Positions 36,188-50,973 of a DNA stretch of 64,000 bases are shown piece after piece. The notes under the pieces were generated by a model. It saw only the letters and a list, made by a program, of their open reading frames with translations, searched no databases and was not told the DNA's origin. Source of the DNA: Octopus sinensis (lineage: Eukaryota); assembly GCF_006345805.1 (NCBI RefSeq), contig NC_043002.1, positions 12,586,001 through 12,650,000 of the forward strand, read 5' to 3'. The translations under genes and the position numbers were made by a program. Numbering within the stretch: position 1 is the stretch's first letter; every line of letters begins with the position of its first letter.

Positions 36188-36506
36188 ATGAACCGACCTC
36201 AACAAATCACTTTCCTCTTCAACTCACCACTTATAATCCTTCTACAATGTGGATGTGGAAGTGGTGGCAATCATGGTATGATAGATGTAAGCAAGTTGTG
36301 TGCGCATAACGAAGGTTACCAATATGTAAAAACCCCGCTCAACTGCAACCAATTCTACGACTGCCGAAGACAGGAATATACTTTCCGGAAGCTGTATTCA
36401 TGCCTGGCTGATGAAATATTTGCACAGCCAATAGAATTGTGCGTTATTAAAGACGACGGGGCAATAGAAGCTTATTGTAAGAAGACCATTGATGTACGAC
36501 TAACTA
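36188..36506 (+). CDS. Gene A exon 1: probable signal peptide + chitin-binding peritrophin-A (CBM14/ChtBD2) domain 1
   Basis: [24 protein letters not shown]... then C-x14-C-x5-C-x12-C-x12-C-x11-C ([23 protein letters not shown]...[16 protein letters not shown]...YC), matching peritrophin-A spacing. Ends at a phase-1 donor ACTA|GTGAGT (36506/36507), just before (TCTA)n. The start codon is less certain than the domain. Confidence 0.85.
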
Positions 36507-37099
36507 GTGAGTACCAACCGACTTATTTATCTGTCTGTCTGTCTATCTATCTATCTATCTATCTATCTATCTATCTATCTATCTATCTATCTATCTATCT
36601 ATCTATCTATCTATCTATCTATCTACCAACCTACCTACCTACCTATCTGTCTGTCTATCTATCTATCTATCTATCTATCTATCTATCTATCTATCTATCT
36701 ATCTATCTATCTATCTATCTATCTATCTATCTATCTGTCTGTCTGTCTGCTGTCTGTCTCTCTCTGCCTTCTGTCTGTCTGTCTCCCTCTCTCTATCTCT
36801 CTCCATCCGTCCGTGTGTCCGTCTATCTATCTATCTATCTATCTATCTATCTATCTATCTATCTATCTATCTATCTATCTATCTATCTATCTATCTATCT
36901 ATCTATCTGTCTGTCTGTCTGTCTGTCTGTCTGTCTGTCTGTCTGTCTGTCTATCTATCTGTCTGTCTATCCATCCATCCGTTCATCTGGCTTTGGACTC
37001 CGGCCATTCTGGAGCACTGCCTTCAATATTTTTATAACTTATTCTACATTAAGCCAAGATGTCTTCCTATGTGTTTCATGATGCATATTGTTCTAATTG

Positions 37100-37720
37100 T
37101 AATGTCCCTATGTATTGTCTTGTCACTTTTAACTTTCGCTTCTTTAGCTTTTGAGATGGTTCCTGATCTTCATATTCTTCCCCTTCAATACTTTGAAAAT
37201 AAAACAAGGATCTTTCTATATAATTTTCCTGTTTGTATTGTTGCTTTCTTCCTCTGCGAATTTTACTTTTAATTCTTCCTTTTTTTTTCTTTATGCCAAC
37301 AAAAGCGCCTCTTTGCTGCCAGCCATGTCCTTCCTTCATCTCTCTATTTCTACTTCCACACAGTTTTCTATCCTTATAAATATCCTTTCTCTGTCTTTTG
37401 TACTGGAATACAATCTCTCAACATCTACCTGTTAATTGCCAGCGATTTCTTCTTCTATTTATATTCCCAAGAAATCCTTCGTCTATTTGCTTATTCCGGT
37501 GTTGTACCTAATTGACGGATTTCCCTGTTGGTTAATAGTTTGTCTTTTGATCCCTTTGAATCTCTCCAGCACCATTCCTGTTCTTTAAAGAGAAGCTTAT
37601 GTTCCTCTAGATATGTACACCTCTTGTTCGCCAATGTATTTGTTAGCAGTTTCCACAACAGTCGCAAGGAATAGTAAATATGCTTAGGCATAGAGTTTCT
37701 GGTACTGATTAGAAAATATA
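37100..37720 (-). mobile_element. R4/Dong-type LINE RT fragment
   Basis: LWKLLTNTLANKRCTYLEEHKLLFKEQEWCWRDSKGSKDKLLTN resembles R4/Dong RT domains 1-2. The left boundary is approximate. Confidence 0.7.
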
Positions 37721-37724
37721 GATC

Positions 37725-38786
37725 TGTTCATAATGGCCCTCTCAGACATGCCCTCAGCCACGCAGAGAGCCACGATCACAAGTTATGCAGATGATACAAA
37801 AGTTTCACAGGCAATACAGAACCCTGAGGACACTAAACACCTGCAATGTGAGCTGGACGAAATATACAAATGGGCTGAAAAGAATAGCATGCAGTTCAAT
37901 GCTGGAAAGTTTCAAGCTTTATACTATCAGCATGCAAAACTGAATGCAATACCCAATGAATACACTGGACCCGGAGGGATTGCAATCCCAGAGGCACAAT
38001 CAGTGCGTGACCTGGGTATTCACATGAGTGATGACGCGACCTTTCATGTACATGTTGCTAAACTGACAATGAAATGTAGACGGCTGGCTGGATGGATTCT
38101 TAGAACCTTTAGAACAAGAGAACAAAAAACCATGATGGTCCTCTGGAAGACACTTGTCCTAAGCCACTTTGACTATTGCTCTCAGCTATGGTCACCATCC
38201 AGTGTCAAGTTGATCACAGAACTTGAGGCGATCCAACGAAGCTACACAAAGAAGATAGCCTCTATGCAGAATGTAAGCTACTGGGAAAGACTCAAGAGAT
38301 TAAAATTATATTCTCTGGAGCGTAGGCGGGAAAGATATGCCATAATATACATCTGGAAGATCCTGGAGGGAAGTGTCCTGAACTTTGGCATCGAGAGTTA
38401 CGCAAATGCCAGAACTGGGCGCCACTGCGTGGTGCCTAGGACTCCAAACCTGCCATCAAGATGTAGGACAAGATTCTGTGATAGCCTGGGCTTCCGAGGC
38501 CCACAGCTCTTCAATATCCTCCCGAAGAACCTGAGAGACCTGCATGGGGTGGATACAGATGTCTTTAAAATGAAGCTGGATCTCTTCCTGTCAGGTGTCC
38601 CAGATGAACCAACTTCACGGCAGGAGGGGCAGATGAGGGCAGCTGCATCGAACTCTCTCATGCACCAAATAGCAGTTGCTAGAAAGCCTCCATGAAGTGA
38701 AACCAAGTAGCAACACCAAATGGCGGTGCCCCAGCATGGCCACAGCTCATAAGCTGAAACTAGAATCAATCAATCAATCAATCAAT
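37725..38786 (+). mobile_element. 5'-truncated CR1/L2-group LINE (RT C-terminal half, 3' UTR, (AATC)n tail) in gene A intron
   Basis: 320-aa open frame with SYADDTK, QFNAGKFQ, VRDLGI, LSHFDYCSQLWSP, YWERLKRLKLYSLERRRER; short 3' UTR; tandem AATC tail. Confidence 0.93.
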
Positions 38787-48310: not shown

Positions 48311-48479
48311 TATATATATATATATATATATATATATATATATATATATATATATATATATATATATATTTATATATATATATATATATATATATATATA
48401 TATATGTGTGTTGTGTGTGTGTGTGTGTGTGTGTGTATTGTTGTTGGCATCCTTTTTGTCTCGGGAGACAATGGAGTTG

Positions 48480-49345
48480 CGCATAAAGTAGTCTAGTCCG
48501 GCTTTTACATTTCATGTCCTAATACATCTCCTGCAGTGGCTGTGTAGTCCTATCCTAGACAAACACTCCCTCTGGCAAGTGCCGCAAATGTAGCGAATAC
48601 TTTACCTGGCTGGTTGTAATGTCATAGTTTCTTGTTGACGTCTTTTCTTGTCTTTCCATTTCTCCTCTCCCTCTATGTCACTCCTTTGTGTTCCCTCTTT
48701 TACGGTACGTCGCCAATCTCCACGTTTGCTGGCAACTGCCTCCCAACCGCTAATATTGATGTTGCAGGCCTTCATGTCCCTTTTGCAAACATCCTTGTAT
48801 CGTAAGAACGGTATTCCCACAGACCTAGTGCCCCTAGCAAGCTCTCCGTAGAGTATGTCCCTGGGGATTCTACTATCTTCCATACAGCTGACATGTCGAA
48901 GCCATCTCATACGTCTTTGTGTGAGGAGTGCAAACATGCTTGGTATTCCTGCTTGCTTGAGGACATCTATGTTGGGGATATGATTCTACCATTTGATGCG
49001 AAGGATTTTCCGGAGGCAGCGCAGGTGAAAGATATTTAGGCGACGTATGGCGTCGTATGGCGTGTGTATGGCATCCAAGTCTCACTTCCATACAGTAGAG
49101 TGCTAAGTACACATGCCTGGTAAATCTTCATTTTTGTGTTTTCGGTCAGCTTATTGTTGTCCCATGCCCGTTTGGAGAGTTGGGCCATCCTAACAGCTGC
49201 CTTGCCAATGCGTATATTGAGCCCAGCATCAAGGGATAGGTTGTAGGTGACGGTAGAGCCAAGATAGGTAAACTTCTCCACCTCCTGTAGTCTGTGGTCT
49301 CCAATATGTATGTTTGGGATGTCCGATGTAGCCTGACCCATGATG
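48480..49345 (-). mobile_element. RTE-clade LINE, 3' portion (in gene B intron 1)
   Basis: QEVEKFTYLGSTVT..LSLDAGLNIRIGKAA, YQACVLSTLLYGSETW, QRRMRWLRHVSCMEDSRIPRDILYGEL..RSVG.P.LRYKD. Confidence 0.9.
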
Positions 49346-50125
49346 AAAGTAGTTGGAATTATATCAGGGAAGCTTTGTATACCACATCAATAGATACTTT
49401 CGGCATGAGAGAAAGGCAAAACCCAGATTGTGTTCAGTGCTAGGCTCACAGAGCTGGAAACAGTTATCGAAGCAAAGCGTGCAGCTCTAATGCAATACAA
49501 GAGTGATTCTTCTACAATTCACTCGAAGAACTCAGAAAACCAAGAAATAAAACCCAACTGACTGCCAGACGCTGTGCAAATAGGTATTGGCAGGAAATCT
49601 GTCAGAGTATCCAGTCAGCTGCTGACAGTGGCGACACCCGTGGGATGTATGACGGTTTGAAGAAGGCCCTCGGTCCTTCCGCAACCAAGTCAGCCCCTCT
49701 AAAATCAACTACTGGAGATCTCAAGAAGTACAACTAGGATCTCTACTCATGGGAGACCTCGGTAGCTGAGGCTGCAATCGAGGGTGTCACAATCTTGCCA
49801 GTCATGTGCGAACTTGACAGTCTGCCATCTATAGCAGAGCTCACCAAAGTTATTGACTTCCTAGCCAGTAACAAGGCACCGGTAAAAGACGGCATTCCCT
49901 CAGAGATCATCAAAGCTGGCAAAAACACCGTACTGCTTCGGCACCTTCATGAGCTTCTGTGTCCGTGCTGGGAAGAGGGTATAGTCACTCAGGACATGCG
50001 GGATGCTAATATCATTACGCTTTACAAAAAAAAAGTCGGATGTCCACGAAAGCTGCTGAGGATCATCAAATCTTTCCATGATGATATGTAAGGCACCATA
50101 CAGCACAATGCTCAACATCAGCCGC
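49346..50125 (+). mobile_element. RTE-clade LINE, more 5' portion in inverted orientation
   Basis: ELTKVIDFLASNKAPVKDGIPSEIIKAG..LHELLCPCWEEG..QDMRDANIITLYKKK, then GCPRKLLRIIKSFHDDM. Confidence 0.85.
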
Positions 50126-50684
50126 CTTCCAAATATATATATATATAATATATATATATATATATATATATATATATATATATATGATATATGGAGAAAG
50201 GTCAAGGTAGAAAATGCTAAAATAATTTTATAAAAAGCATTTCAGTACCGGTTTAAGTCATTGAGACTTTTTCAACGATAAGTATGGAAAAAAATTAAAT
50301 TTTGGAAAAATTAAATGAAAACTTTTTTACAAGAATATTTGCATAGTATTCATATACAAGGGGCATTTTCATTGTTTCTGTATGTCTCTGTCTCTCCTGT
50401 TTACTCTTGTGGGTTCGAGGGGTGTGTATGTGTGTGTATTTCTATGTGTCTGTGTTTGCCCGCACCACCAGTGTTTGACAACGGATGCTGGTGTGTTTAC
50501 GTGGCCATAACTTAGCGGGTCGGCAAAACACCACCGATAGAATAAGTACTAGACTTACAAAGAATAAGTCCTAGGGTGGATTTCTTCGACTAAAACCCCT
50601 TTAAGGCAGAGCTCCAGCATGGCTGCTGTCAACTGACTGGAACAAGGAACAGAATAAAAGAATAAATGTAATGAATTAACGTAC

Positions 50685-50973
50685 CGAATTTTCCTCCATA
50701 AACTTGGCGGTCACAGTCGTCATATTGGCTGTTCTTAAGCACACAGACTTGTTGAGATTGTGAAAACACGGTCATATTGCCACATGCCATTACTTGCGGG
50801 AACATAGGATCACAATAGTAGAATTCACTGCAGTTGTTTGGGGATCGGACAAAATGCGATCCTGCTCTTATTGTTGTCTGTTTACACAAAGTTGAGATTT
50901 GCTGAGCAATTCCTTGACTGTAAACTGCTGCCACTGCGATCAAGAGAAGGGCGGCCACAACACGGAACTCCAT
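50685..50973 (-). CDS. Gene B exon 1: signal peptide + CBM14 domain 1
   Basis: MEFRVVAALLLIAVAAVYSQG (clear signal peptide), then C-x17-C-x5-C-x9-C-x12-C-x9-C. Phase-1 donor TTCG|GTACGT after codon 96. ATG context ACAATGG. Confidence 0.92.

Follow-up and report, generated by a model that had tools for sequence, protein, structure and literature searches.

The locus

The DNA analysed here, hereafter the window, is a stretch of 64,000 nucleotides from Octopus sinensis. It contains two small genes, referred to as A and B, each of which encodes a leader peptide followed by two domains of the CBM14 type, with no catalytic, mucin or other module. Both are likely to be genuine genes for secreted two-CBM14 proteins, members of a family that is restricted to octopods at the thresholds used and that may act in chitinous matrices. 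The region 60973..35383 is 100% identical to a 25,591-nt locus of O. sinensis CM016864.1, so that the window corresponds to approximately 12,586,001-12,650,000 of that record. Gene A lies on the forward strand and gene B on the reverse strand; they face each other 3' end to 3' end, with their stop codons approximately 3.1 kb apart, and the same tail-to-tail pair is present in O. vulgaris.

This layout had been proposed in a first-pass annotation made from the DNA letters and a list of open reading frames (ORFs), together with three splice junctions (36506^42083, 50685^47303 and 47124^45384), product sizes of 160 and 156 aa and a position of both genes among repeats. All of this holds: the junctions are in the sequence and are canonical, the spliced products have the predicted lengths (that of gene B matches two database proteins exactly), and the exons are flanked by microsatellites and transposon debris. 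The second exons had been reported as missing from the ORF list and, indeed, neither gives an ORF of at least 40 aa in its true frame. The parts of the two genes are as follows.

36188..36506, plus strand: gene A exon 1, 319 nt, ending in phase 1; start codon, leader and CBM14-type domain 1
36507..42082, plus strand: gene A intron, 5,576 nt, GTGAGT...TTGCAG; O. vulgaris and O. bimaculoides share the donor and acceptor sequences
42083..42246, plus strand: gene A exon 2, 164 nt with the TAA stop; CBM14-type domain 2 (four Cys)
50973..50685, minus strand: gene B (LOC115213516) exon 1, 289 nt, phase 1; predicted signal peptide MEFRVVAALLLIAVAAVYS, with a putative cleavage site before QG, and CBM14 domain 1
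50684..47304, minus strand: gene B intron 1, GTACGT...TTTCAG; holds retrotransposon-like ORF fragments and microsatellites
47303..47124, minus strand: gene B exon 2, 180 nt; CBM14 domain 2, ending in the T with which the stop codon begins
45384..45237, minus strand: gene B exon 3, with a putative 3' end; its first two bases (AA, 45384..45383) complete the split TAA, the remainder being 3' untranslated region

Gene A, a gene missing from two annotations

The splice sites of gene A are canonical (A/GTGAGT after 36506 and TTGCAG/GG before 42083) and enclose a phase-1 intron; the coding sequence (CDS) ends at 42246 with a TAA at 42244-42246, and the spliced product has 160 aa. Two codons 5' of the ATG there is an in-frame TAG, and the dinucleotide AG directly precedes the ATG. 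The exact protein has no match in a collection of 15 billion proteins. Its sole close relative is the product of O. bimaculoides LOC128248024, a full-length protein of 158 aa that is about 90-92% identical and whose two-exon structure, as predicted by NCBI, matches that of gene A.

The ATG, donor, acceptor, stop and reading frame of gene A are intact in 3/3 species (O. sinensis, O. vulgaris and O. bimaculoides), and exon 1 is completely identical to that of O. vulgaris at the protein level. The coding sequences of O. sinensis and O. bimaculoides differ by 18 synonymous and 15 non-synonymous changes. The resulting ratio of non-synonymous to synonymous rates (dN/dS) of 0.18 (Fisher p = 4e-6) indicates that the frame is under purifying selection; taken by exon, the ratio is 0.10 for exon 1 and 0.46 for exon 2. 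Judged from these comparisons, gene A is a real protein-coding gene, a new and divergent member of a known family that is missing from two annotations.

It might instead be argued that gene A does not work, that it is a decaying or never-expressed copy whose frame persists by chance, and that only gene B is functional. At its position no gene is listed in the loci or protein sets of O. sinensis or O. vulgaris, the latter of which was annotated with transcript evidence; its second domain is degenerate, and no canonical AATAAA occurs within 1 kb of its stop codon. Its leader, moreover, is weakly hydrophobic (Kyte-Doolittle values of 2.1-2.4, compared with 3.2-3.3 for gene B), with a hydrophobic core broken by Asn-Ser-Pro. 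However, reading frame, start and stop codons and the two splice sites are all intact in three species, the dN/dS of 0.18 is that of a frame under purifying selection, the cysteines lost from domain 2 (C2 and C6) make up one complete disulfide pair and leave no odd cysteine behind, and the same gene model was predicted by NCBI in O. bimaculoides. A non-working gene A is thus very improbable.

Gene B, its isoforms and its name

Gene B is already annotated. Two database proteins are identical to its product of 156 aa, namely XP_029638389.1 of O. sinensis and CAI9724912.1 of O. vulgaris, the latter named 'binding beak 2'. Intron 1, in phase 1, has canonical sites (G/GTACGT after 50685, TTTCAG/AT before 47303), and the second intron has the donor T/GTAAGT after 47124 and the acceptor TTCCAG/AA before 45384. 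An in-frame stop is found just 5' of the ATG, and AATAAA signals are located at 45298 and 45237. The hydrophobic core of the leader is of the classic kind (Kyte-Doolittle 3.2-3.3) and is followed by a putative VYS/Q cleavage site. Since the annotated CDS spans 5,591 nt, which equals 50973..45383, the split stop codon belongs to the database model of the gene. The split stop was also considered as a possible over-reading, given that the unspliced frame ends two codons later (in TQCK followed by a stop); this was rejected, as the acceptor at 45384 is used in the annotated CDS and again in a second isoform.

That second isoform, the 132-aa O. vulgaris protein CAI9724911.1, results from the removal of a 95-nt GT-AG 'exitron' (47242..47148, minus strand) within exon 2, which shifts the frame and deletes most of domain 2; the exon-3 acceptor is identical. 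The annotation of O. vulgaris drew its alternative forms from PASA assemblies of RNA-seq and Iso-Seq data and its protein names from Blast2GO (PMC10700109). The PASA-derived isoform is indirect evidence that gene B is transcribed. Considering how names were assigned, 'binding beak 2' is presumably a condensed form of 'chitin binding beak protein 2'; taken literally, it would imply orthology to squid DgCBP-2. A literature search on the LOC and XP identifiers, on 'binding beak 2' and on octopus chitin-binding proteins found no expression data.

Another O. vulgaris protein with the name 'binding beak 2' (P0003, 188 aa) consists, by eye, of a domain 1, the start of a domain 2, a partial domain 1 and again the start of a domain 2. 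This model was probably mis-joined or fuses two tandem paralogues into a chimera.

Domains, cysteines and fold

The curated cut-off of the Pfam model CBM_14 (PF01607) is 22.1 bits. Gene B clearly exceeds it, both as a whole (58.6 bits) and with each of its domains (33.3 and 38.1 bits), and gene A exceeds it as a whole protein (29.3 bits). Thus, the CBM_14 assignment of the first-pass annotation stands for gene B and for the complete product of gene A; it does not extend to the domains of gene A taken singly, which score 19.5 and 20.3 bits, just below the cut-off. The four domains and their cysteine spacings are listed below.

36299..36478, plus strand: gene A domain 1, Cys38-Cys97, C14C5C12C12C11C
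42094..42225, plus strand: gene A domain 2, Cys111-Cys154, C18C10C12C, four Cys
50886..50713, minus strand: gene B domain 1, Cys30-Cys87, C17C5C9C12C9C
47292..47134, minus strand: gene B domain 2, Cys101-Cys153, C13C5C10C12C7C

Both domains of gene B and domain 1 of gene A follow the six-cysteine register (approximately CX13-17CX5CX9-12CX12CX5-11C). Domain 2 of gene A departs from it: C1, C3, C4 and C5 are retained, Lys stands at the position of C2, and the protein stops short of the position of C6. In peritrophin-A domains the disulfide pairing is C1-C3, C2-C6 and C4-C5 (PMC10619976). It follows from this pairing that the domain has lost one whole disulfide pair and holds no orphan cysteine, and such a loss would fit with a domain that is still folded and still under selection.

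The AlphaFold model of the O. bimaculoides orthologue of gene A has a moderate mean pLDDT (predicted local distance difference test score) of 70.7, with values of 76-88 in domain 1. In a Foldseek comparison, its meaningful matches are exclusively CBM14 structures. The best is EHEP, the Eisenia hydrolysis-enhancing protein of Aplysia kurodai (E 1e-5), and Der p 23 (E 6e-3), tachycitin (E 0.56), the CBM14 domain of CHIT1, Avr4 and Blo t 12 are also found.

The description of both products as small, non-enzymatic and non-mucin proteins, composed of a leader and two CBM14-type domains, was accurate. The exons could conceivably be pieces of larger genes (for example, chitinases or peritrophins of the mucin type) with further exons elsewhere, and the AG just before the ATG of gene A leaves room for an upstream 5' exon; no other support for this was found. 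However, independent annotations give 156 aa for gene B and 158 aa for the orthologue of gene A, with agreeing starts and stops, in-frame stops closely precede both ATGs, eleven family members all measure 151-171 aa, and a tblastn search yields no additional CBM14 exon in the 64-kb window. It is therefore extremely unlikely that the two genes are fragments of larger ones.

An octopod family and the relationship between A and B

The two proteins had been said to share little sequence and, indeed, BLASTP gives 25% identity over 131 columns covering both domains. Their homology, also over both domains, becomes evident when profiles are compared: in hhalign, a profile of three A orthologues and a family profile of twelve proteins (A excluded) align over 118 columns with a probability of 95.6% and an E-value of 1.2e-8. 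The inter-domain intron is located in both genes nine residues past C6 of domain 1 and in phase 1 (within a split codon), a position common to all family members; the first-pass annotation had already pointed to this shared phase-1 intron. Within the reach of such comparisons, A and B are true but remote paralogues.

At a threshold of E <= 1e-5, which is strict and leaves weaker relatives outside the listing, a family profile search returns only proteins of Octopus and Argonauta. In a neighbour-joining tree, these form three branches: the B type, the LOC115213491/LOC106869808 type and the A type. Members of the B type, among them O. sinensis LOC115213541 and LOC118763692, O. bimaculoides LOC106872971/2 and homologues from Argonauta hians, are 57-75% identical among themselves. 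The LOC115213491/LOC106869808 type is 46-49% identical to the B type, and the A type is 23-28% identical to every other member of the family. The octopod B-type proteins resemble gene B throughout, with a signal peptide, two six-cysteine CBM14 domains, 151-171 aa, a phase-1 exon 1, a 180-nt exon 2 and a stop on a third exon. In the four B-type genes solved (4/4), exon 1 measures 277-289 nt and exon 2 exactly 180 nt, and the stop or a short tail lies on the third exon. Gene A shares their layout and intron position and differs from them in its low identity, in a coding sequence that ends in exon 2 (as it does in the LOC106869808 type) and in a domain 2 without C2 and C6.

A phmmer search with the A orthologue against 1.84 billion representative sequences found only one other protein, O. 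bimaculoides LOC106869808 (155 aa, two CBM14 domains). Gene A scores 51.6 bits against that type and 38.1 bits against gene B. In O. sinensis, at least four similar genes form a same-strand cluster at 12.63-12.88 Mb, which has gene B as its terminal member and includes LOC115213541 at 12.69 Mb and LOC118763692 with another 152-aa gene at 12.86-12.88 Mb; gene A sits at the edge of this cluster on the other strand. Because the nearest relatives of gene B are its 57-75% identical cluster paralogues, A and B are neighbours and not sister genes. The proposal that one old inverted duplication gave rise to both is not borne out in this form, and such an event might at best have been the opening step of a longer history. 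That the split is old does appear to be correct, as A is very distant from the other members, whereas its O. sinensis and O. bimaculoides versions share 92% identity.

Conservation of the pair in other genomes, which the first-pass annotation had considered worth following, is found in O. vulgaris. There, as in O. sinensis, the A gene and B-type genes are adjacent. In O. bimaculoides, by contrast, the A orthologue is located at 23.37-23.39 Mb of CM046606.1 and the B-type genes at 103.9-104.0 Mb of the same record, approximately 80 Mb apart; collinearity of the A locus with the window extends to position 44494, where a 4.7-kb run of N begins. This separation could be due to an intrachromosomal rearrangement, a scaffolding error or gene loss. 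The identity between O. sinensis and O. bimaculoides also differs among branches, being at most 74% in the B cluster and 92-95% in the A and LOC115213491 types. The low value for the B cluster suggests either fast divergence with birth-and-death turnover or orthologues missing from the gap-rich O. bimaculoides assembly.

A second tail-to-tail pair of family members was observed elsewhere. Approximately 5 kb downstream of LOC115213491 (O. sinensis) and of LOC106869808 (O. bimaculoides), on the opposite strand, there is an intact exon-2-like frame (DDPRCEIETGLNKDPTDCNRFIPCYNGTSYLSMPCQKNLHFNVAEQRCMEPEKSDCE, followed by a stop) with an AG acceptor upstream; its exon 1 would lie beyond the flanking sequence covered. 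It lies at 21766..21936 (minus strand) of locus L009, at about 25.74 Mb of O. sinensis CM016864.1, and at 20876..21046 of locus L006 in O. bimaculoides; it is 98% identical between the two species, and no gene is listed there.

Chitin or another ligand?

The most likely mechanism is that of a predicted bivalent chitin-matrix binder. After secretion, a small aromatic-plus-polar face of each domain would dock on chitin chains; as two such domains are present in one short polypeptide, the protein would be bivalent and might cover the chitin fibrils of an extracellular matrix, or tie them to one another, as in the beak, the radula or the cuticle of gut or suckers. This role is modelled on the one proposed for squid chitin-binding beak proteins. 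The only hints as to tissue are the Blast2GO-derived name 'binding beak 2' and the weak match to DgCBP-3 described below. Gene A is an old offshoot of the family, maintained by purifying selection, in which domain 2 lost the C2-C6 pair when a Cys was replaced by Lys and the stop moved forward.

One line of support for chitin binding comes from DgCBP-3 of the squid Dosidicus gigas. Domain 1 of a B-family profile matches the chitin-binding domain of this protein (CBD-gamma, 7BWE) with an E-value of 1.2e-4 and 24.9 bits, a weak similarity at the level of the domain only. In DgCBP-3, Y164 and F183 are reported to stack on the chito-oligomer (bioRxiv 10.1101/2020.01.08.899344), and they align with Phe51 and Phe70 (gene B numbering), which are invariant in the family, including A. 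Family membership, the match to 7BWE and the two conserved aromatics together favour chitin binding. The squid DgCBPs are secreted cephalopod proteins with cysteine-rich chitin-binding domains of the peritrophin type. However, they are larger and, according to the literature, multi-domain, and their likeness to the octopus proteins is one of domains.

Several observations weigh against this reading, in addition to the weak leader, the missing poly(A) signal, the absence from two annotations and the sub-threshold single domains of gene A noted above. The polar contacts of DgCBP-3, N170 and Q176, are not conserved in the family, and no squid or other decapodiform protein appears at E <= 1e-5 in the family search. 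A profile of A orthologues has zero matches among PDB sequences. The best PDB sequence match of the B-family profile is not a chitin-binding protein at all but EHEP (E 4.9e-11), which has neither chitin-binding nor antibacterial activity and binds phlorotannin (PMC5271319, PMC10619976). Der p 23, too, has the CBM14 fold without binding chitin (PMC10619976). Thus, the general statement that CBM14 domains bind chitin, which the first-pass annotation took as established, is not a safe rule.

This raises the question of whether the octopus proteins could be secreted, soluble binders of non-chitin ligands. The model is EHEP, a protein of digestive fluid that sequesters polyphenols from the diet; in gut fluid, mucus or saliva, the octopus proteins would bind small molecules of aromatic or xenobiotic nature. 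EHEP (8IN3) is the top solved match to the B-family profile, across two consecutive domains and their linker, as well as the best fold match to the model of the A orthologue. Like the octopus proteins, it comes from a mollusc and is made only of peritrophin-A (CBM14) domains, with short linkers and no mucin linker; it is secreted and has the C1-C3/C2-C6/C4-C5 scheme. It differs in having three domains and 229 aa and in coming from a herbivorous gastropod. Counted per domain, EHEP, with 29.4 bits for two domains and a further 19.3, matches no better than DgCBP-3, with 24.9 bits for one. The ligand site of EHEP is central and built by three domains arranged in a triangle, whereas A and B have two domains each, and octopuses are carnivorous and have no exposure to phlorotannins. 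A soluble ligand binder of this kind therefore appears unlikely.

A related idea is that the A type was re-purposed from chitin to another ligand and, in a wider form, that the octopod family is the cephalopod counterpart of EHEP, binding aromatics or catechols. Domain 2 of A has lost C2-C6 and the C-terminal strand while the gene remains under purifying selection, which makes a shift of ligand possible; we nonetheless regard the idea as highly improbable. If true, such proteins in the beak or cuticle could tie chitin scaffolds to catechol cross-linking chemistry.

Small CBM14 proteins are also known from arthropods, namely peritrophins, the CPAP1/CPAP3 'obstructor' proteins, tachycitin and Der p 23. 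These resemble the octopus proteins in belonging to PF01607, in fold, in having one to three domains, and in following the plan of a secreted protein without an enzyme domain. The similarity is confined to domains, domain number and linkers differ, and some of these proteins, such as Der p 23, do not bind chitin. Tachycitin in particular suggests a role as immune or antimicrobial lectins, that is, small basic chitin binders on epithelia or in haemolymph acting against the chitin of fungi or parasites. Both mature octopus proteins are indeed small (approximately 15.6 kDa) and mildly basic (pI 8.0 and 8.5), tachycitin is among the fold matches of the A orthologue, and the low between-species identity of the B cluster points to the turnover or fast evolution that is common in immune families. 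However, the tachycitin similarity is non-specific, the low identity may stem from orthologues missing in fragmented assemblies, and the gene B proteins of O. sinensis and O. vulgaris do not differ at all (100% identity). An immune function thus seems quite unlikely, and a role of both proteins in a chitinous matrix is the reading that we prefer.

Repeats and other features of the window

The intron of gene A contains three further elements.

36524-36979: (TATC)114 microsatellite
37733-38695, plus strand: 320-aa ORF, C-terminal fragment of a YADD-type reverse transcriptase (RVT_1 17.8 bits, below the cut-off)
40668-41157: 183-bp tandem repeat

The sub-threshold RVT_1 match is the only one in a Pfam scan of the ORFs in the repeat regions. 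Since the O. bimaculoides intron lacks the stretch with this fragment, it looks like a lineage-specific retrotransposon insertion. Upstream of gene B, 270-500 bp from its start codon, lies a (TTC/GAA)n array of approximately 78 copies (51242..51467), which gives rise to long poly-Glu/Lys and poly-Ser pseudo-ORFs within 50999..51558. A 29-bp satellite, ACTTACCACACAGCCACTCCTACGCCTAC, occupies 56259..59919 with 125 copies (93% match); as none of the three forward frames is closed, it produces spurious ORFs of 1,180-1,261 aa, and a related, shorter array is found in O. vulgaris. An assembly gap of 100 N is located at 28798..28897.

Significance

The finding is sound but ordinary and will not surprise specialists. 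Its immediate value is for annotation, as gene A can be added with exact coordinates. The similarity of the octopus proteins to DgCBP-3 and EHEP is measurable, and it shows that EHEP has relatives among molluscs. Beak proteomes are available for one squid species only (PMC9716703). Within this context, a compact, apparently octopod-specific family of proteins composed only of CBM14 domains offers candidates for the poorly known protein part of octopus chitinous structures.

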